Positions 11,791-28,929 of a stretch of 64,000 nucleotides of DNA are shown here, in pieces. This DNA comes from Dimorphilus gyrociliatus (Eukaryota; Animalia; Annelida). The position numbers and the translations under genes are program-made. The notes under the pieces are model-generated. The model saw only the letters and a program-made list of their open reading frames with translations, had not been told where the DNA came from and ran no database searches. Numbering within the stretch: position 1 is the first letter of the stretch; each line of letters begins with the position of its first letter. The stretch covers positions 372,001 through 436,000 of the forward strand of contig CAJFCJ010000028.1 in NCBI GenBank assembly GCA_904063045.1, written 5' to 3'.

Positions 11791-13342
<1,552 letters not shown>

Positions 13343-14826
13343 ATCCAACAATAAAAACAATAATTCTCTCTCTTTCCTAGATTCATGAAGTTTATTAATA
13401 TCTCTGTACTTTTTTTTAACGGGAAAGGTAGTTTTAGCATTATAGAGGTTGCGTAATCTTACCAGGTGTTTGTTTAGTCAACGCTTTATAAAAAAGAAAG
13501 ATAAAAAAAATGAAATATACACCTAAAGTATAGCGTTCATTTAGCTCTTTTTCTTTTCTTTCACTCCCTTTTTATTCCTCTCTCTCTCTCTCTCTCTCTC
13601 TTTTCTACAATTCTTTTAATACACGTACAATAATATTTAAACTATACACACAAAAAATTGAAAGAATAAACATAAAAGAAAGGAAGTTAATTATTACCTT
13701 TATTCTCTTTCTTCTCTTTTCTTAAAAGGTAATTGAGTCGCATAGTGTTTAGAAATGAATTTTTTAGGCCTAACTATTAAATTTTAAAGAGTTATTATTA
13801 GAAAAAAATTAAGTAGCACAGATAGAAAAATCATATTTAATATTGTTGAATTTGATCTATTAAAATATTCATTATTATTGAATCTCTTTAATATTTCTTT
13901 TGTTCAAAGCACCGCGACGTCGAATCGTTTCAATTGCGTAGACGCTTTTTTTTTCCAAGCGTACTGTAAACCTTGTAAATATAAATTCTAAAGTTCTCAT
14001 ACAATATCGAATAATAAACGGCAGCGAAACGATTACTTCACGAGGCTTCTTTGAGCGTCCAATCCCCTCTTTGATTTCTTAGTTAGCTACGATTGCCAAA
14101 TAAAGAATATAAAATAAAAGATGTTTAAACTCTTTGTTGTTTTAATGGTAAACATCTTTTAACGCTTTTATTATTTAAGATAAAAAAAGAAACGTCAGAA
14201 TATCAAATTGATCAAAATTTTTATTCTTTATATAACATATCGAATTATAGGCTTAAAAAAAGGTATTTAGACGTCCTTGCAGTAACTAATCTCTTCTAAC
14301 TATAACGTTTAATTTATGAGGTCGTTATTTATTTTTGTTTCCATATAATCAACCAATCCCTATCACGATTGTATTGGTATTGCTTTAGCGCGTTATTCTA
14401 TTTTCCCTTTTTTTTTGTTTAATAGCGTTTCTTTTACGCGTCTATTAACAAATTTGAAAAAAAAATCCGATTTATTAATTGAAAAAAAAAAATGTTACCT
14501 ATTTTTACCTTTCAAAGCAATAATATCAATAAAAAGAAAGGAGAGGGGTGGGAGGGGCAAAATGAAAAAAAAATTCAAGCTGATTTTACTAAAGAACCAC
14601 TATGTTTATGGATTTTGGTTTCTGTTGAACCTAATTAGTATATAATTCCTGTAAAGTAGATTTTTTTAAAATGGTACTTGAGTAGTAATTAAAAGAGTTA
14701 ATGGATAAAACTATTGTAATTTAAGATATTTTATTTGTAAATTTATTGAATATTTCAAATTCGTTTTACCAATAATACACAATATTGAAAAGAAAAGAAT
14801 GAATGACGGAGAGAAAGAAAGAAAAG

Positions 14827-14858
<32 letters not shown>

Positions 14859-15623
14859 TGGTTAAACTTCTTTCTATTATTCTAGTCACAAGACCTACCT
14901 ATAAGAAGGATTATATGAATCGGAAATGGATTTCGTTCTAATGATTCGATCCTATTTAAAATTTCTTATTTATTATATTAGTAATATTTTTTTTTGAATC
15001 AATTGTGACCTTTTTTTTTAATATTCGATTTTGTATTTCCTTTTTTTATCTTTTTAACTTCTCTATTGATTAATTCCGTATTTAGAAGGTAGATTAAATT
15101 AAAAATTTAGTTTCTATAGCTATGAGTAATACATGTTACAATGACTAATAAACGAATAAATGGTATTAAAAAAATATACTCAAGTTTTAGTATAATTTAT
15201 TAGGAAGAGAGAGAGAGAGAGAGGGAGAGGGAGAGGGAGAAAGAGAATGGGGAGAGAATGAGAAATAAATAAAAGATGATAAAAAATATGATAATACGAA
15301 GAATGTTTAATGCTGCTTAGTAATGTTTTAGTAATTTTTTGTTCAAAAAAATGCGTTCATGTATTGAGCATTCAATAATTATTGTTAGTAGATATTTCTT
15401 TAAATAGAAAAGAAAATGAAAAATTCTTGATATCTTTAAAAATAATACTCATTCCCATTAAAAGGCTTTTCTATTAAAAGAAAAAACAATCTTCCATTTG
15501 GCATACGTATAATAATACTCTGTAAAATATAAATTTTTCATTCATCACATTTATATTGTTCTTCTATATTTCTTTCTCATTTTTCTTTATTTTTCTTTCT
15601 TATTTGTTAATTCTGTTGAATTT

Positions 15624-17433
15624 TTATGCTACGGTATCAACTGATGGAGTTGCTGTTAGTAGCTTAGTTTTCATATGATCTCCGTAACAAGTTTGATCGT
15701 GTTGACAAACTTCTAACGAACGTGTAGTGTCACCGTAAGTATTACCAAAATGATATCTTCTCTCTATAGAGGAAAATAGTAGTTTATGTTCAATGTTTGC
15801 TCAAGTTGTTTTGATTTAAGTAAACATACGGTGACAGTGGCCTGTATACTTAGGTATCATTCCAGGCTGTACAAAGATCCTCTTAGAGTACATGGCTCCT
15901 GGACCTGCTGCTGGTACGGGAGCAGCTTTGTACAAACTAACAGGCGTTGATCGGCTTAATGCTGCTCTTTCTGTCTCTCCGTAAAAATTTTCCAGTCCTA
16001 GTTTCGTAGTACGATTATATCTGTAAATATTATATTATGAAGCGCCATCTTACGACCTTTTCATCATTAATGAAGTTCCCTATAAGAGAAACCAAAGTAA
16101 ATTTACCTTGCACCAAGTCCCAATTCTGTAACATCGATTCTAGGCACAAATCCCAAATATCCAGGTACTGGAGGTTCTGTCGGTAACCTCTTATCCTCAG
16201 CCATTACTGGACGCCTTGGGTGAGTATCACGATAAGTGTTCAAATGGTCCCTGACCTCGGGGTCAAAAGCTTTTGCCTGTAGAACAGGCCTGCAGCTGGA
16301 ACTCATTCTCAAAGAATGAGCGTCATTACTAGTTTTCTCATAATTTCTTAAGTGCTCATCGATACAATAGTCGCAGTCGACTTTATAAGTATCGCCAAAT
16401 TTAAAAGGCTTCCTCGGAATATATCCCGTATAGCCGGGAATCATTTCTTCGGTTAATTTGTTGTCTCCCGAAGGTTTAGGCAGACGTAGGTGTCTTGGCG
16501 GAATTGGTTCCAATTCCGGTCTAGCATCTTTATTCTGTTATCAAGCATATAAGATAGGCAAATATAGGACGATAATTAACCGTTATATTTCACTATATAA
16601 CTTTATAGACTTGTAGGTCAAGTATAAAATATTTAAATAGAGTAGAATTTAGCGTAGGCTTTCATAAACGGACTTGGATATTGAAGAAAGCCTAGATTTA
16701 TAATAGAAGAGAAGAAATTACGATAAAATTCAATATTAAGTCGATTACTACGATAATCTTAGAATTAGCAAAAAAATTGATTTTTTATCTTTAACCGTTG
16801 GCGAGAATTTCAAAGAAAGATAGGAAGAAATTAAATTAAGCTTTCTCTCTCTTTTTCTCAGTTCGTTATTTATTTAATGATTAACGTCGTCATTCCTTCA
16901 CCAAGTAAATTACGTGAGAATTTATTTCAACAATTAGAGCTTAATGAATTGTTGCTAGGTGATAAAACCAGTTAAAAGGGTTTGCCATTTGACAATGCTA
17001 GTGACAGTTTTCGTTCAATTTCTGCTCTTAGTGGACATTTTAAACAAGGCTAATTGACGTTGGTAACGGAGGCTTAATTATCCCATTCAATATATAAAAT
17101 AGGGTACATAGGAAAAGAAAGCAATGGAATTGAATAGGGAATTCAACTAACCGTAAGCAATTCGTGAGTGTCTTGTCCATAAGTTTTTCCATTCCTATAT
17201 TTTAACTGTGGAATAAAACCCCGATACCTAAAGGATAAAAAGAAGAATAAACACGCTAATTACTTATGACAAACATTCTTCAACCGTTTTCTAATGTTTG
17301 TACAATTCTAACCACAAACGGCCAATAAGAAAAGACAAACACTTTACCCAGGCAATTGCGTTCCGTCCTTCAATCCAGCGAAGGATCTTCTCTGTTCTAA
17401 AGTCGGTCCGCCACCGTATTGTATAGTAGCCAT
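15624..17433 (-). CDS. C10orf82/SPMIP5-like sperm/ciliary microtubule inner protein (PGY-repeat, FAM166-related); 5 coding exons
   Basis: Spliced protein MATIQYGGGPTLEQRR...PGYRGFIP...IPGYTGYIP...EPPVPGYLGFVPRIDVTELGLGARY...MIPKYTGH. EPPVPGYLGFVPR..VTE.G.GARY resembles human C10orf82 [25 protein letters not shown]. Confidence 0.75.
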
Positions 17434-18235: not shown

Positions 18236-21200
18236 ATGGGAAGTACTAATACCAAAGTCACATCAGGAGTAAAAGCCCAAGCAGCCGGTATAACTTTTGA
18301 TTTATATTCTTTGGTCAACGTCAAAGGAGGCGGTGAACTTATCGATTTAATGAAGGATGCAAACAAAAGTCGAAATTATAAAGAATTGGATAGAAGGATT
18401 ATTGAGGGTGTAAAACCATTTTTATATAATGAAGGTCGTGGAAAAATTGTTGATATAAGAGAGATTTTAGCGTATAGAAGTTGTAAAGCCTCTCCAGAAA
18501 TCAATTTTGAAATGTCGGACACCGAATTTATAAAGGCTAATGGCTATCAGACAAAAGAAATCTGTTGGAAATTGGATAAACTTGGAGCAGTTGGGGAAAC
18601 AATATTACATACTTGTTTATTAAGTTCTACAGCGTCACACGCTGATTTAGCAAAACGTTTATTAAAACATTTTCCAAAGTTGATTAAGGTAAATAATCAT
18701 TGTTTTTCTTTAGTACAAGGTTAGCCGATCGAATATATTTGTATATTTACAGCATATACGTATTTTGTTTATAGAATTCAATTGTGTCCTCTATTTTTTA
18801 TTAACAATGAAATTGTTATCAATAGGATATGTACCTGAGTGACGAATATTACGGAGAGAATGTCCTTCATATGGCTATTGTAAATGAGGATCCTGCCATG
18901 GTTAAATTCCTTCTAGACCACGAGGCTGATATACATCAGAGATGTTGTGGTAACTTTTTCCTTCCGGAAGACCAAAAAGTTTATAAAACCCATTCCTGGC
19001 TACACGAATGGTACGATCTACCAACCGATACCAATTATTATGGTTATACGTATTGGGGTGAATATCCTATTGGATTTGCCGCTTGCCTAGGTCAAGAGGA
19101 ATGTGTAAGGTTACTAGTAGCAAATGGAGCTGACCCTAATCTTGTTGATTCAAATGGGAATACAGTTCTTCACCTTTTAGTTATACACGATCAAAAGGTA
19201 AGTAGTATATTTTTTGACCTTTAAACTTTTACCTTTATTAGTTTAAATACTTTTATAATATAAAAAAAGTTTATTTTTATATTTTCTGTACTGTAAAGAC
19301 TTGTAATATATAATATTATTTAATAATATTGTCCTAAAACTGATTAAAAAATTGAACTAAATGTATAAAAAAAGATGAGGGAACGAGCAATGACTGGAAA
19401 GGTATGTAACATAAAGTCTGTTTTGTAATACTGTTTTTAAAAGCGGTTAGTGAAGAAAGAGAGGAAAAAAAGTGATATAAAAATCAATATAGCGTCTAGC
19501 ATGATTGTAATGTTTGGCTGTCACATCCTGAAAACATTGATTTATCGACGTGTTTGTTCAATGCAATTGCGGAATTATAACGCCGTCAGTTCGGTTAATG
19601 ACAGCTATGATTTTAATAATGAACGACATTTACTGATTTTTTGCGTTCCATTTATATATTTACATTTCCAAGTCGATAATTCGCACTCAGAATTACTAAA
19701 ATCTAAGAGAAGTTCATTTATATTCATACGTTCAATTTTCTAATAGTCTTTCTTATACAAACTATGTATTTTATCTAAAACTGTATATAAGAAACCTTTT
19801 TTCATAATAATCAATTAAAATTCAAACAAACATCATTACGTAATACTTAATTTATGCTTTACCAGTTAAGTGTAAGGTAAAGGTATCAACGGCATCTCTT
19901 TTTTTTTTACCTTCTTTGTATATTTCATCATAGGCTTAGTTTTTAAATTTATAAATAGAAAAAGTTGAAAAGGAAAGGAAAGAAAAAAGAGTTGAATTTT
20001 TTTGAAAGCGTTTGTTTTTTTGGTTCTCGTTCATTGAATAGTTTAAAATAAGATACAATAAAAGCACTCTGTTTTATTTCAATATCGTTTAATAGAGCCA
20101 TTAAAGGGTTGATTGACGTCGATAATATCGGAAGGAAATGATCATAAACATAATTGCCTTTTAAAAAATAAAGAATTCTAATCTTTTTTCCTCGTTCCTT
20201 TTTAACTAAACCTAACAGATTATCCTAGTCTTATCATTCTGATTTAGGGGAGATATTAATACAAACTCTTTCACTTCTCTTAACATTTATATAGGCTTAA
20301 CAACACGAAAAGACCTAGAATTCTTTAGATGTGATAGATAATTTTACTAACATTATCGGTAAATATAGATAAATTATGAAAAGAACTTGAAAAAAAAAAT
20401 ATTGATATACAGTATATATATAGCTATATATAAATATATATATTGTCTAAATATAGGAAATGTATGAAAGAAAGTGAGAATGTTTAATTTTGTTGTTTCT
20501 TTTTAAAATAGGATAACTAAAAAAATAATTATAATAATATTTGTTTTTTTTTTAAAAAAACAAACCACCATAAAATTTTCCCTGGTAAAAATTTGCAGTA
20601 CTGCCAACCAGAGGTTTGAATTTCTTTTTACAAAACAAAAAAAAAGATGATTAAGTTTATTCTGGTTTAAGTTATTTGTTATATTTATTGAATTTTACCT
20701 ATTCCCATACATTTATATAATTATATATATATATATGTGTATATAAAAAGATATATAAATTTATATATACAATGTATATATTTAGATATAAATGTATAAA
20801 GTTAAATGTAAAAGATTCTCCCTTTAAATTTTGTAATTAGCAATTGTTTGATTCATTTTGATTTAACATAGCATTATCGTATAATAAGAACAAAGGAAAA
20901 GCAATAATCAATGAATATTAATAATTTGAAAAGTAAAAAGTATTCATACATTTTTTGCAGTATTTAGGCTTTATTGTCGACAGTTATTTACTAAACCAGT
21001 AGAATGTTCTGTGACTAACTTAATGTCTTATTATTTTTTATAATGTAGTTTTTGTATTGAATGAATTTTGGTGATTAATTTTTTTTTGTTAATATTAACA
21101 AATTTATCTATATAAACAGTATATATATATATATTTATATTTAATTGAGAAAAAGATAAAAAACAAAAATTCCTCTTTTCATCATATTAAACCTATTTAG

Positions 21201-21813: not shown

Positions 21814-24800
21814 AATAGTATATAATACAAATACACTTGAACCATTTCTTTATTCTATATCTGTTTTTCTATCTAATGTATTATGCATAGCATATTTACA
21901 TGTTTATATGTTTCTTTATAGTATATGCATGAATATGTTGTGAATACAAATATTCAGTATGTAGATTATATGTTATGTATTTGTAAATATATATACAATA
22001 TATGCAAATATAAACTAATAATTATACAGACATTTCATATATCGTATATTCTATATACATAAATATTGTAACTAATTAGGTGTTTATAAAGTTTTTTTTT
22101 ATTTATTTTTATTAAAAGTATCTTTTGTTTTTTTAAAGAAAAAAAAAGACTATTCTTTTCTTTTTTTTCTTTTACTATTAGAAATTTAAAGAAACTTGTA
22201 TATTTAACGAAAGTTAATATGCATCTATATATTAATTATATATATATATATATAGATGCATATCTATTCTTTTCAACTTTAGTTTTTATTCTAATTAATC
22301 CTTTTCAGGAAATGTTTGATTTATTAGTTGAACTCGGAGGAAAATTGAATATAAGAAATCATCAAGAGTTAACTCCTCTAACTTTAGCTGCGAAATTAGC
22401 AAAAAAAGAGGTATGAATAATAAATTATAGGGATTTATTTATGAAAAAGAATAAAGGATATTATCTGTTATTTAGTTAAGTAATAAATGATTTCGAAGGA
22501 TTAAAAGCGTCATCTAGAATAAAGAAAGCATAAATTTATTAAGAGTTTTTTTTCGTTTATAGTGTAATAAATTCTCGTTTATTGTTTTTATTTAAGAATG
22601 GTCTGTTGTAGTACTTTTCGTATTAAAATCATAACAGATGTACGAACATATTCTTAAAATTGAAAGAGAAGTTTATTGGACATTTGGTGATGTTACTTGC
22701 GCTGCATACCCCCTTGACCATATTGATACTATTTCATCTACTGGAGAAATTAATACCAACTCTGCAATGTACCACGTAATATATGGAGATAAACAAGAGC
22801 ATATAGATATGATAGAAGGACTTATAGGTAATTTATTGGATCAGAAATGGAAGACATTTGCAAAATTTAGATTCCTGAGAAGATTCATAGTTTTCACAAT
22901 GTACTTTGCCGTTTTTGTTGTGGCTTTTTCTCTAAGACCCGGAACAGATACTGATCCTAAAATTCGCCCAGAAAATCGAACCAACTCAGCCGGTCAAACA
23001 TTTTTAGTAAACAATACTATAAAGAATCCTTGCTATCTCCAAAGAACAAAAACATGGGAAGATTACACTCGATTAGTATTAGAATCAATAATGGTTTTAG
23101 GAGCGACAATATATATATTATTGAGTTTGAAAGAAGTCTATCATCAAGGCTATAAGATATTCTTTCAAACGTTAAAGTCAGCTCCAGCCAAAGCTATGTT
23201 TCTTATGGCAAACTTTTTCGTTCTCCTTATGCTTCCTGGAAGAGCCGCATGCGCATTTACATACGAAGATGTAATGGGGGTTCTAGCTATATTGTGTACA
23301 GCTCCGTATTTTTTATTTTTTTGTCGGTAAGTCATAAGAGAGTAAATCAATCATCGCCTTTAGTTTCAACGTTTTCTTTTCATTTGATTAGCGGTTTTAA
23401 GCTTGTGGGACCATTCGTCGTAATGATCTACAAAATGATTAGAACTGATTTGTTAAGGTTCTTTACGATATACTTGATATTTGTTATTGGATTCTCTCAA
23501 GGTGGGTAAAGATTTATATCTTTTTAATATCTAGTTTTATCTTTATTGCTATATTATCACTATTAACTATTCTGTATCCATTCTTGATAGGGAAAAACTT
23601 TTTCATACTATATAAGCATTGATATAAAATGTATTATATATATATATATATATATATATATTAGTATATATAAATTTATATATATATATATATATTTAAC
23701 TATATAATTTTTAGGTTAGCATAGCCTTTCGAAGCTGTAAATAAAAAAAAAACAAATTATAATTGATTATTTAAGCCTACTATATACTGTACCGAAATCG
23801 AGAAAATACAGTGTTCAATAACCCGGCCGAGGCAATCATGGGTTTGTTTATTATGTCATTGGCCCAGTTTGCTGATACTTATGAAAGTATGTCGGATTTT
23901 GGAATATTTCTTGGAATTTTTCCAAAGGTAGAAATAAATTTAAAAAAAAATATGGCCAATAAAAACTAGGTTAAATCGTTTCTTTTTTAAATTCTTGTAT
24001 TAAGTTTTTATCCATAAAAAACTTTTAGTTAAAATTGTTTCTCCATAGATTTTTATTAGTTTGTTTCTTTAGTTTAAAAGAATTTACAAACAAAACAAAA
24101 AGGTTGATGCAAAATATAAAAAATATACTATTCATACAACCTCATATACATACATGAATGTTTTTACTATAGCCTACTACATTTTATACCGCGATAAAGC
24201 TTGGACGATGTTCTCTGAACCTTTTGAAGCCGTTATGGCAATGTTTATAATGAATTTAGCACAGTTCCTTGATCTATACGACTCATTCTCAGAATTTGAA
24301 GAATTGCATTATATACCGAAGGTGTGAAAAGAATTGTATAAAGTAGTTATTAAACAAATTATGTATGTAGCATATAAAAATATACATAAACAGTAGGTTT
24401 TAGTATATTTTTATAAGTACATATTTAAACCCTTCGCTTGTTTACCATCACCTAAAAACAGCACCAAGAAAACCACGATATTTATATACTGTATATATAT
24501 ACTGTATATATATACATATATATATATATATATACACGTATATGTGGAAATGTGCATGGTGCTACTCTTTGAATATGTAGTTAGTTAGTCAACTTGTCAC
24601 AATTTTTTCACCAATACCTACATATAGTTTATCCAAATTTGTTATAATTTTACTAACAATCCTTATAAGTTTATTTATGGTTTAAAAATTTATAATTATA
24701 CTACTAAATTTAAAACGTAATAGAGGAAGAGAAAGAGAAGGAGAAAGAGAGAAAATGACAGAATTTATTGATTAACCAATTTAAAATTTAACTAATTAAT

Positions 24801-26832
24801 TCGCAAAGATATAATATATTCCAATTGTTTAATTAAAATTTATTATAAAACAGCCTACTATATCATATTTAGAAATACTCAACAATATTCATATTTTCAC
24901 GATCCTATTGAATCGTTTATGGGAATGTTTGTTATGTCTTTGGGTGAATTTAAGGAGATATATTCATCTTTTCACCAATTCAAATTATATGACGTCGTTC
25001 CTAAGGTGCCTTTTATCTTTTTAAGTATAGTTGTTTAAAAAATAAAGGAAAAAAGAACAAAATTTTCTTGCTAATTCAGCTAATTAATTCTTCATGTCTA
25101 TCTTTCGATTTGTACTTGATTCAACCTTTGTCATTGACAAAGAATTAGTTAGTTGTTTACTCTATTCATAACATGATATAATTTGCATGAGAAAAGAAAG
25201 GTTTTATAGAGAATTTTCAAGAATAAATAAAAATCAAGTAGGGAAAAGAAACATAACAAAGATTATTAAAAATCCTACAAGTTAATTAATTTATTTTGCA
25301 TGTTAAGCATTTATTCGTCATATTATAAATGATTAAAGAAAAACAGTAAATATGTGACATTTTCTAATAGATACAGCTTTTTATAATGTTTAATTTTAAG
25401 TTTAGTACATTGGCACAATTAACCATTAATATAAAATAACCTTCCCCTATAATTTTTCAAACTATTCATAACGATTAATAGTCTTTACAAGTTAATCGTT
25501 AAGACGTGAATAGACATCTGATTAACCATTATAAATAATTGCAAATATTCTAAAGTCTATTTATCGTCTTCATGAATATAAATTAGATGAATGTACATTT
25601 ATTTATTTATTCATATTTTATTCTAACATGTAATATATCGATACTTGATTACCAATTCTTGTCTTATAAATTATTTAAGATTATTGATAGTGACGAATAG
25701 GGTAATCAAATATCATATATCAGTTTTTTAGCTGTGTCGTAGAAAATCCTAAATGACAGTTGCATGCAGGAATGTTCGTTATGTTTAGAAGTACCCCAAG
25801 TAATATCTTCCTACATCCCATAGAAGCAATGATGGGCATGTTTATTATGTCTCTCGGCGAATTTGCCGACATTTATGAAGCTTTTTCTAGTACACCATCC
25901 AATACAATGTCCCAGGTTCCTAGCGTTGTTAAATGTTGAAAAAAACCCTATTCTTACCGTCTTCTACTTTTAATCATTTCCAAAAGAATTCAGTGTCTCT
26001 TACCTCGGTGTCTCTTTATATTTTATTTCTTTTTTTTTAAAAAAAAAAAATAAATCAAATAAAAGAAAATTATATTAATATATACTGTATATGTGCTTTT
26101 TCTGTATATATATAAAGTATATATACTGTATATACTGTATATTAGTATATATTATATATATTTTTATACACAGTATATATATATATTTATATATATTGCC
26201 ATTAAATCAATCATTCACATTTTTTTTTCAATTTCCATGTTAAAATATTTCTTTTCTTGCTTTTATTAAGTTTGGTTAATGTTGTTTCAACTTATTCTAT
26301 ATACTTTTTATATTAGTTAGAAAGTATTGCATTCCTATACCTCTTATAATTTTAATATGAAATTTCTACAGTTAATATTTGTTGTCTATATGGTACTCGT
26401 TACTTTACTTCTGGTAAATATGTTAATCGCTATGATGGCTAATACGTATCAAGTTGTCTCCGAAACCCAAAAAGAATGGCTTAGACAGGTATTATTTTAT
26501 TGTTAGAGTATATACCCCTGCCAATACTTGCTATTATTGTTTTCTATAGTGGGCCAAAATTATTCTTGTAATTGAACAAACTGTAACAACATCCGAAAGG
26601 AAAAAACAGTTGATCAATTATTCAAGACCAATGAAAGATGGACGAAGAGCATTGGTTATAAAATGGCATCAATCCGTAAAGATACTATATATTGTTTCGT
26701 CACATTTCCTAACATCTCTCTTTGCAGGAAAAGGAAAAAGAAGAAATTCAAGAACAAAAAGAGGAAATAAAAAACAGACATATATCCATTGTCCAGAAGA
26801 ATTTATCGGATAGGCAAGCGAAAGCATTATAA
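18236..26832 (+). CDS. nan: TRPV channel, Nanchung/OCR subfamily. Constitutive exons 18236-18688, 18826-19197, 22309-22410, 22638-23326, 23392-23501, [one of four pore cassettes], 26372-26488, 26550-26675, 26728-26832
   Basis: N-terminus [16 protein letters not shown]...[13 protein letters not shown] resembles insect Nanchung (MGNTESNVTSGVKKQA..LYKFVNLKGGG). Ankyrin repeats ([30 protein letters not shown]); S4-S5 [16 protein letters not shown]; S6/TRP region [14 protein letters not shown]...EWLRQWA. Confidence 0.93.
21766..21809. repeat. (AT)n microsatellite in TRPV intron
   Basis: About 22 uninterrupted AT units. Similar (AT)n or (AG)n tracts occur elsewhere, e.g. ~37233-37262, ~39756-39788, ~38279-38302. 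Confidence 0.9.
23776..23927 (+). CDS. nan: TRPV pore cassette exon A
   Basis: TTAAG|CC TAC...CCA AAG|GTAG, 152 nt, phase 1 in / phase 0 out. Encodes [51 protein letters not shown] with no stop. Confidence 0.85.
24173..24321 (+). CDS. nan: TRPV pore cassette exon B
   Basis: CTATAG|CC TAC...CCG AAG|GTGT, 149 nt, phase 1/0. Encodes [50 protein letters not shown]. Confidence 0.87.
24854..25005 (+). CDS. nan: TRPV pore cassette exon C
   Basis: AACAG|CC TAC...CCT AAG|GTGC, 152 nt, phase 1/0. Encodes [51 protein letters not shown]. Confidence 0.87.
25770..25915 (+). CDS. nan: TRPV pore cassette exon D
   Basis: ATGCAG|GA ATG...TCC CAG|GTTC, 146 nt, phase 1/0. Encodes [49 protein letters not shown]. 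Confidence 0.87.
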
Positions 26833-27534: not shown

Positions 27535-28929
27535 TTAGCTAGGTTGTTGGCGTCTTCTTTGAGTTCTTTGCTTATCAAAACGAGCCTCCATTTCATCCAA
27601 AACTCTTGGTGTAAATCTGACAACTAACTTAACCGTTCCTAGAGAAAAAAGAAATGATTATTAATTAATTACCTCTTTCTTTGTCATATATATGTATAAA
27701 TAGATAAATTATGGGAAAACAATTCATAATAAAAAACTTACCAGAGGCAGCTTTCAATAGTTCGACTGCTTTTTCGTGTGGTTCGCCTTCAACACTCTAT
27801 CAAATTACAAATTTGATTTACCTCTTGTCGTGGACAAATAATAAATTACTTACAACTCCATTTACGGATAATAGTTGATCGCCTCTTTTTAATCCACCTA
27901 TTTTATCGGCAATACCATTTGGAATGATTCTCGATATATAAATTGGTGAATTTTGTTCCTTTCCTCCCATTACATTAAATCCTAAACCTTCGTCAGTTTT
28001 CGGCAATTCGACAACTCTTGGATGAGCGTGTCCTTCAGAGGCAGCAAACGCTGCAACTGTTGCTTTAGCTGTAGCATTTGCTCGAACCTATTTCGAAGTT
28101 TAAAAATATACTTAATTATTTGATTAAGGAAAACAAAATAAAATCAACCTCCGGGCTAGCGTGAACGTCTACCGTTTCGTAAACATTCTCGTAAACCTCT
28201 CGAACAGCGTGGAGAAAATCACTTTGTAGTACTTTTTGAAGGGCAGCTAACTTGGGACTCGCAACTTCGGCTATATTTTTAAAAAGAAGAAAGGCGGAAA
28301 ATTAGAAAAATATAACAGTGAATATATAGTAAATATAACGTTTAACGTTAGCTTTCAGTTTCTATGACGGTATGTGAATAGTAACAGCTACTCTACTTTT
28401 AAGTCGATCAATTAGCCTCTGACAAAGTTAATAAACGTGCCTAGAATATATTAAATTATTGTAGACTCTGAAACGGGATTAACTATGGAAAGACCCCCGA
28501 AATGAGAACTGCACGCTTCAATCGTCATATGAAATGATAGTAATTTACAATTTTCGATTTTTTTACCCGGACCATTTCTCAATAAAACTACTACAACAAG
28601 TAATACTTACTCTTTTGCAACTGTTCCAGTAATTCTACTGCTCTTGCAACATCTGGAAAAAAAACACATATATTTTAGATTCTTTTCAGTATACTGTGAT
28701 TTAACATGGCAATTAGTCAACAGATATAGAACGAGTTCGTAGTAAGCCATTGAGACTAGGTGAAAAAATAGATAACCTATTCGAAAATATACGAATTATT
28801 AATTCGTCCAGATTATACAACTAATGATGAATGTAAAAGAAATTTTAAAGATAACAAATTTCAATTGTAAAATGATAAGATCATACCTTTTTCCAAATTT
28901 AGAGACGGTTCACCTACAGTAGACGCCAT
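27535..28929 (-). CDS. LIN7: Protein lin-7 homolog (Veli/MALS; L27 + PDZ)
   Basis: [27 protein letters not shown]...[21 protein letters not shown]...[52 protein letters not shown]...[12 protein letters not shown]. Confidence 0.96.

Follow-up and report, generated by a model that had tools for sequence, protein, structure and literature searches.

What is to be made of a sensory channel gene that carries the exon for its pore in four versions, side by side? The question is posed by a TRPV gene of the tiny marine annelid Dimorphilus gyrociliatus, which occupies the + strand from ~18236 to ~26830 of the window that we analysed, i.e. the 64,000-nucleotide stretch of contig CAJFCJ010000028.1 (assembly GCA_904063045.1, positions 372,001 to 436,000). 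By its sequence matches, the gene encodes a TRPV subunit of the Nanchung/OCR-2 type. In insects, Nanchung (Nan) and Iav make up the transduction-associated channel of stretch and hearing organs, which is a commercial insecticide target, and the nematode counterpart of Nan-Iav, OCR-2/OSM-9, underlies nociception.

The answer that we favour is that one exon, running from the outer end of S5 to the post-filter linker, exists in four tandem copies (cassettes A, B, C and D), of which one would be spliced into each messenger RNA (mRNA). Each mRNA would then encode a Nan subunit with an outer pore of its own, bearing Glu and Asp in D, Gln and Asp in A and B, and Glu-Phe-Lys-Glu in C. The cassette set is real and probably functional. 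Whether the alternative pores tune permeation or block is a harder question, and we lean, with some reserve, towards the view that they do.

Gene identity and the pore exons

Which TRPV subunit is this? The earlier note on this DNA had taken the exons for pore exons of a TRPV channel, and comparison with the PDB agrees: the S1-S4 exon (22638-23326) finds its best solved relative in stink-bug Nanchung (E 5e-52), ahead of Iav (1.7e-29) and TRPV6 (3.5e-13). Lone cassettes gave weak Nan matches only (E 0.02-0.2), and hence a pore profile of 37 orthologues was used, which again ranked Nan first (1.5e-63), Iav second (9e-42) and TRPV6 (3.5e-23), as well as TRPV3 and TRPV1, behind Iav. Exon 18829-19224 gives the protein an N-terminal ankyrin repeat domain (Pfam Ank and Ank_2, E 8e-15), the S6 exon matches Ion_trans in Pfam (E 7e-6), and this exon together with the start of the next one encodes S6 and the TRP box (..NMLIAMM..EW.RQWA..).

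All of the pore exons lie on the + strand between two constitutive exons: one for the S4-S5 linker and S5 (23392..23501), which ends ..GFSQ in phase 1 with g as its last base, and the S6 exon (26372..26488), which is entered in phase 0. Cassette A (23776..23927, 152 nt) runs from the end of S5 via turret and pore helix to the filter SLAQFAD (23856-23876), and its post-filter linker is hydrophobic. Cassette B (24173..24321, 149 nt) has the filter NLAQFLD (24253-24273), followed by a strongly acidic linker, and cassette C (24854..25005, 152 nt) the filter SLGEFKE (24937-24957), with Lys right after the filter Phe and a net-basic linker. Cassette D (25770..25915, 146 nt), with the filter SLGEFAD (25850-25870), is of the canonical type and closest to the single-cassette orthologues of other phyla. 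The span that had been proposed for the four pores, 23776-25915, runs exactly from the first acceptor to the last donor. Each cassette lies between an AG acceptor and a GT donor, begins in phase 1 and ends in phase 0, has a length of 2 mod 3, and translates without a stop from the outer end of S5 through turret, pore helix and filter to the S6 linker. These translations carry one residue of the split first codon (Ala or Gly), and the exons were analysed singly, not as spliced protein.

Could four such copies be chance open frames, or a duplication artefact of the assembly? We give this explanation almost no credence. A 50-codon open frame is expected by chance at about 1-3 % of positions in these AT-rich introns; the four proteins are 38-53 % identical over about 50 residues, with 10 invariant columns, rather than near-identical as copies made by an assembler would be; a 57-nt direct-repeat family, 63-77 % alike, runs across the cassettes; and the likeness among them is confined to the exon bodies, ending at the splice sites. 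Additionally, an independent assembly from a sister species has A and B in the same order. The cassettes are, on this comparison, homologous exons and not products of chance.

The cassette structure is not recognised in the public annotation. The public model, DgyrCDS13867 (CAD5125666.1; P0270), has a protein identical to the window's exons, the S5 exon included, and is a 387-residue fragment that spans 22219-24327 of the window and begins mid-gene. In this model cassette A is cut after ..AQFADTYE at a cryptic site and chained to B, and the protein ends via read-through of B's donor; the model also lacks the ankyrin exons at the N-terminus, both later cassettes (C and D), S6 and the TRP box. 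In other words, the annotation wrongly joins A to B, and the cassette finding corrects a broken gene model. DgyrCDS13867 also clusters with a 230-residue open reading frame that matches the S1-S4 exon at 90 % identity.

Filter charge and residue register

How, then, do the four pores differ? The translations give exactly the segments that the earlier note had listed, SLAQFADTY (A), NLAQFLDLY (B), SLGEFKEIY (C) and SLGEFADIY (D), and with them its observations that A and B carry neutral AQ for GE and that C has a Lys before the outer acid. Counting along the seven-residue filter segment, position 4 reads Q, Q, E and E in A, B, C and D, position 6 reads A, L, K and A, and position 7 reads D, D, E and D. 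The net charge of the segment is -1 in A, -1 in B, -1 in C (two acids and one Lys) and -2 in D, so the claimed difference in filter charge is borne out by the counts. The linkers that follow differ as well, with net charges of -1 (A), -3 (B), +1 (C) and -1 (D), which fits the description of B as acidic and of C as more basic.

Where these residues would sit was judged from an AlphaFold fold of a Saccoglossus orthologue (P0231:500-640, from S4-S5 to TRP), whose filter is identical to that of D, computed with an alignment of 37 Nan-type proteins. The model reaches a predicted local distance difference test score (pLDDT) of 80, has Nan 9nvr_A as its best structural match, and shows a pore helix from P56 to S67 (its last residues reading ..MS), a non-helical L68-G69-E70 and a short helix from F71. 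The model thus places L-G-E in the loop behind the pore helix, in keeping with the identification of these segments as selectivity filters. Because L68-G69-E70 is non-helical, the difference between G-E and A-Q is predicted to belong to the filter loop proper, and the A/L/K position and the conserved Asp/Glu are predicted to lie on the first turn beyond.

The register relative to better known channels is less simple. Outer-filter acidic residues of TRPV1 (D646) and of TRPV5/6 (TIID) control Ca2+ permeation and polycation block, and the earlier note had cited these residues in arguing that the worm pores differ in function. The residue-by-residue match proved ambiguous: profile alignment sets the TRPV6 filter Asp opposite position 6 (A/L/K/A), with a gap adjoining, and not opposite the E/Q position. 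The TRPV6 alignment is gapped and of low identity in the filter, and the T-I-I-D motif, which gives a four-Asp ring in a homotetramer, occurs in none of the cassettes. An alignment for C. elegans agrees in this respect. It pairs the Phe of OCR-2/Nan with Y604 of OSM-9, the Iav-type partner (PMC4164786), and position 6 therefore corresponds to OSM-9 D605, at which D605K gave dead channels, D605N partly defective ones and D605E channels that behaved as wild type (PMC4164786). Whichever register holds, the cassettes differ in charge at or beside the critical site.

Selection in a sister species

Are the differences maintained? L001 (Logan SRR23372229), a genomic contig from a sister species with about 79-91 % nucleotide identity, holds the S1-S4 and S5 exons and both A and B, all in unchanged order and with conserved splice sites. 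The contig ends just after B, and the selection figures thus cover A and B. Cassette A (L001 1915-2064) has a ratio of non-synonymous to synonymous divergence (dN/dS) of 0.16 with a synonymous divergence (dS) of 0.29, cassette B (L001 2615-2761) a dN/dS of 0.10 with a dS of 0.45, and both filters, SLAQFADTY and NLAQFLDLY, are identical between the species. The corresponding values are dN/dS 0.05 and dS 1.26 for the constitutive S1-S4 exon and dN/dS 0 and dS 1.90 for the constitutive S5 exon, in which 15 codon changes are synonymous and 0 non-synonymous. By these ratios A and B are under purifying selection. Their synonymous divergence is also about four times lower than that of the constitutive exons (Fisher p = 7e-6), a pattern typical of regulated alternative exons, which suggests that dense splicing-control information lies inside the cassettes themselves.

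Splicing logic

What would keep the cassettes apart in a transcript? Since every cassette measures 2 mod 3, the frame shifts whenever two are included or all are skipped. When two cassettes are joined, a second-placed B runs into a stop at codon 26 and a second-placed D into one at codon 18, and when all four are skipped a stop falls inside S6. Three or four cassettes together would restore the frame but repeat the pore. Steric exclusion is not the mechanism of exclusivity, because the introns between cassettes measure 245-764 nt. Docking and selector RNA pairing of the Dscam kind was likewise considered and set aside, as the long inverted repeats consist only of (TA)n tracts and a conserved 17-mer has no complement in the window.

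This 17-mer, CCTTCGCTTGTTTACCA, forms an island at 24431-24447 in the B-C intron that is identical in the sister species, with the surrounding intron diverged; a complementary partner was sought within the window and none was found. On its conservation, the island may be an element of splicing control. The (TA)n and TATATACTGTATATA-type repeats lie before A (23618-23711), between B and C (24479-24543) and after D (26071-26207). They are self-complementary and could pair, and such tracts may simply be common in the genome.

Cassettes in molluscs and other animals

Is Dimorphilus alone in this arrangement? Among mollusc RefSeq proteins, isoforms of one gene have identical flanks and different cassettes, with boundaries as in the worm (after GFSQ and before S6); in Mytilus, Crassostrea, Ostrea, Dreissena and Pomacea they are named merely 'TRPV5-like isoform X..'. 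The filters read NVGDFED, SLGEFGD and a second SLGEFGD in Mytilus, NVGEFED and SLGEFGD in Crassostrea and Ostrea, SVGDFEE and SLGEFGD in Dreissena, and SVGQFED and SLGQFGD in Pomacea. As in the worm, the copies are of the same exon, stand in tandem between S5 and S6 and differ in filter charge: in Crassostrea virginica (L003) the order is S5 (14025-14135), II (14481-14627), I (15433-15597) and S6 (16732-16848), and in Mytilus galloprovincialis (L004) it is S5, II, III, I, S6. The class I cassettes bear an extra turret with two cysteines (C-D-P-x-x-x-P-C). The sets also differ. Molluscs have two or three cassettes and Dimorphilus four; molluscs place the canonical cassette first, Dimorphilus places it last; and the derived mollusc class gains an acid at position 6 (G to E/D) along with a disulfide-type turret, whereas Dimorphilus drops the Glu (AQ) or gains a Lys.

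Of the 152 distinct cassettes among the relatives retrieved, 57 have E at position 4, against 44 with N, 20 with D and 12 with Q. Gly occupies position 6 in 78, Glu in 25 and Lys in only 4, and 117 have D at position 7. A-Q at positions 3-4 is found in Dimorphilus only, G-Q at these positions is the rule in gastropod canonical cassettes, and the only other setting in which Lys is seen at position 6 is a mollusc TRPV paralogue that is separate and conserved (TLGEFKY).

A maximum-likelihood tree of the cassettes was built from 53 columns, of which only the strong nodes count. The mollusc class I cassettes form one clade (95/95), and Dimorphilus A and B (98/94), with C as their sister (93/94), form another; D stays with the canonical cassettes, among which the tree gives it no firm place. 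As class I and A+B+C fall into separate clades, the tree suggests that the cassette duplications of annelid and molluscs arose independently and that the derived copies in both altered the filter charge. D is the ancestral form, and A, B and C are lineage-specific derivatives. A bolder extension, namely that pore-cassette switching in a Nan-type subunit is a recurrent invention of spiralian animals, made independently in annelid and molluscs and toggling charge at the same two filter positions, we put forward only tentatively and consider rather doubtful. If it is true, one gene and one Iav partner would give a graded series of sensory transduction channels, from strongly divalent-permeable ones (rich in Glu/Asp) to monovalent-preferring or poorly conducting ones.

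Two observations on the relatives may be recorded here. Protein P0300 of the hemichordate Ptychodera flava (1128 aa) was examined as a case of chained cassettes and rejected, since it fuses two tandem Nan-type gene copies whose pore segments are identical; it is annotated as one protein and is probably a mis-merged tandem duplication. In Crassostrea virginica, L003 16817-17150 holds 6.1 copies of a 55-nt unit, which are 96 % identical. The unit reproduces the final 33 nt of the S6 exon plus the GT donor, which results in a row of identical candidate donors.

Functional interpretation

What might the cassettes do in a channel? Without a partner, Nan makes no defined pore; its working form is a heteromer with Iav in a 2:2 ratio (PMC12808645), and partnership with an Iav/OSM-9-type subunit is needed in insects and in C. 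elegans (PMC12808645, PMC4164786). If the worm subunit likewise assembles 2:2 with an Iav-type subunit of its own, the chosen cassette would decide two residues out of four in every charged ring at the pore mouth. From one cell type to another, cassette choice would then probably shift the balance of divalent and monovalent permeation and the degree to which polycations or protons block the channel, perhaps with changes of conductance or filter gating as well, and C would be likely to deviate most because of its Lys. Different sensory cells may be tuned in this way, and splicing, in place of gene duplication, would let a miniaturised genome diversify its sensory channels from a single Nan gene.

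Several points weigh against tuning of permeation or block. The Nan filter of the stink bug, SMTSFGD, has no acid at position 4, and yet the stink-bug Nan-Iav channel carries current and is sensitive to block by ruthenium red (PMC12808645), so loss of the Glu alone does not predict loss of block. Stink-bug Iav (TLGDYNY) supplies an Asp of its own. With a TRPV6-like register, the side chain at the E/Q position might face away from the pore, and the fold described above is that of an orthologue monomer, not of the worm isoforms, and does not show which side chains are turned toward the pore axis. Turret, pore helix and linker vary among the cassettes too, and selectivity need not be the selected property. 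Additionally, purifying selection was measured on A and B, and Dimorphilus transcript open reading frames were sought in protein collections (with Mytilus and Owenia pore-region queries and the fragment P0270) and none were found; an exact look-up of ATG-started open reading frames over cassettes A-D and S6 in the protein collection returned none present.

These last points bear on a different explanation: maybe only some of the cassettes make protein, with C, or A and B, as rarely spliced relics or as regulatory 'poison' choices that lower output? The transcript searches are compatible with this, as is the reach of the sister-species conservation, which extends to A and B and not to C or D. 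Cassette C is the obvious candidate, for it has Lys where Lys killed OSM-9 and the weakest polypyrimidine tract of the four. However, C retains its open frame, canonical splice sites and all invariant cassette positions, and the same holds for the whole set, in which all four frames are open (against the chance expectation of about 1-3 %), all AG/GT sites are present and every family-invariant position is kept. The selection on A and B, visible at both the protein and the synonymous level, speaks against relics, as does the age of the A/B/C duplications (41-53 % identity), none of which has decayed; GEFK, moreover, is found in the conserved mollusc paralogue. We therefore regard unused cassettes as improbable.

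A more serious rival grants that the cassettes are real and assigns them another task, i.e. the tuning of assembly or partner choice (by way of the pore helix and S5/S6 contacts), of filter gating or desensitisation, of the response to extracellular modulators (by way of turret and post-filter linker) or of ciliary trafficking, with filter charge incidental or secondary. The cassettes indeed differ over their full length (38-53 % identity), turret included, with linker charges from -3 to +1, and the two-cysteine turret of mollusc class I points in the same direction. That Nan has no defined pore by itself makes assembly a live variable (PMC12808645), and position 4 varies freely in working Nan orthologues, as the counts of E, N, D and Q given above show. 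Against this stand the independent annelid and mollusc sets, both of which change charge at positions 4 and 6, the strict conservation of the A and B filters between the two worm species, and the functionally critical role of charge at the equivalent OSM-9 position. We consider such a non-selectivity role possible but on the whole unlikely, and continue to favour the tuning of permeation or block.

Neighbouring genes

Head to head with the channel gene, at 16103-16513 on the - strand, lies a CMI2B-like/SPMIP5 gene for a ciliary microtubule inner protein (Pfam E 7e-12), and the same neighbour is present in Crassostrea virginica (L003 1-662) and in Mytilus galloprovincialis (L004 1-672). The Nan-type gene and the CMI2B-like/SPMIP5 gene are thus a microsynteny of two cilium-related genes that is kept across annelid and molluscs. 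A beta-tubulin exon (12209-13342, +; Pfam Tubulin and Tubulin_C) lies upstream of the channel gene, and a PDZ-domain gene (27818-28006, -) is found on the opposite strand just downstream.

Comparison with known channels

The closest known systems are the Nanchung/OCR-2 subunits themselves, i.e. insect Nan-Iav (PDB 9NVN-9NVS) and C. elegans OCR-2/OSM-9, with which the worm gene shares the ankyrin domain, the six-helix core and the TRP box, and among which its best sequence and fold matches fall; unlike these relatives, its S1-S2 loop is short. Cassettes C and D carry L-G-E-F, the motif of OCR-2 (TIGEF) and of sea-squirt Nan (TLGEF) in PMC4164786, whereas insect Nan reads S-[LM]-T-[NS]-F-G-D, unlike the worm cassettes. 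With the Asp ring of TRPV5/6 (TIID) and with TRPV1 D646, the worm pores have acids at the outer filter in common; the motif is not common to them, and the register is uncertain. A literature search on alternative pore exons in Nan/OCR-type TRPVs found nothing, and to our knowledge the Nan/OCR genes of insects and nematodes are not known to have alternative pore exons.

Two channels outside the TRPV family offer instructive parallels. In TRPM3, alternative splicing alters the pore loop and changes divalent permeation and pharmacology (PMC9290681 and work cited in it). In that channel an alternative splice site lengthens the loop by a few residues, whereas in the worm a whole pore module is replaced by means of duplicated exons. 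In invertebrate NALCN, mutually exclusive exons swap the filter between EEEE and EKEE, as first found in the lophotrochozoan Lymnaea (PMC3557258). The worm gene resembles NALCN in that Glu in a cation-channel filter is exchanged, by exon swapping, for Lys or a neutral residue, and, if cassette switching is indeed recurrent, cassette C would give a mixed acid/base ring like that of NALCN EKEE. The two differ in that NALCN is a four-domain channel in which one exon alters one of four filter residues, always at a fixed position, whereas the worm protein would be a subunit of a heterotetramer, with two of four residues altered and a four-way choice. Beside NALCN and TRPM3, what is new here is this four-way choice, a natural Lys-bearing pore and an apparent recurrence in two phyla. 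Nature has, in effect, supplied four interchangeable pores in the worm, and two or three in molluscs, on a constant body, which amounts to a chimera series for the filter and turret residues behind Ca2+ permeability, block and gating in this branch of the TRPVs.

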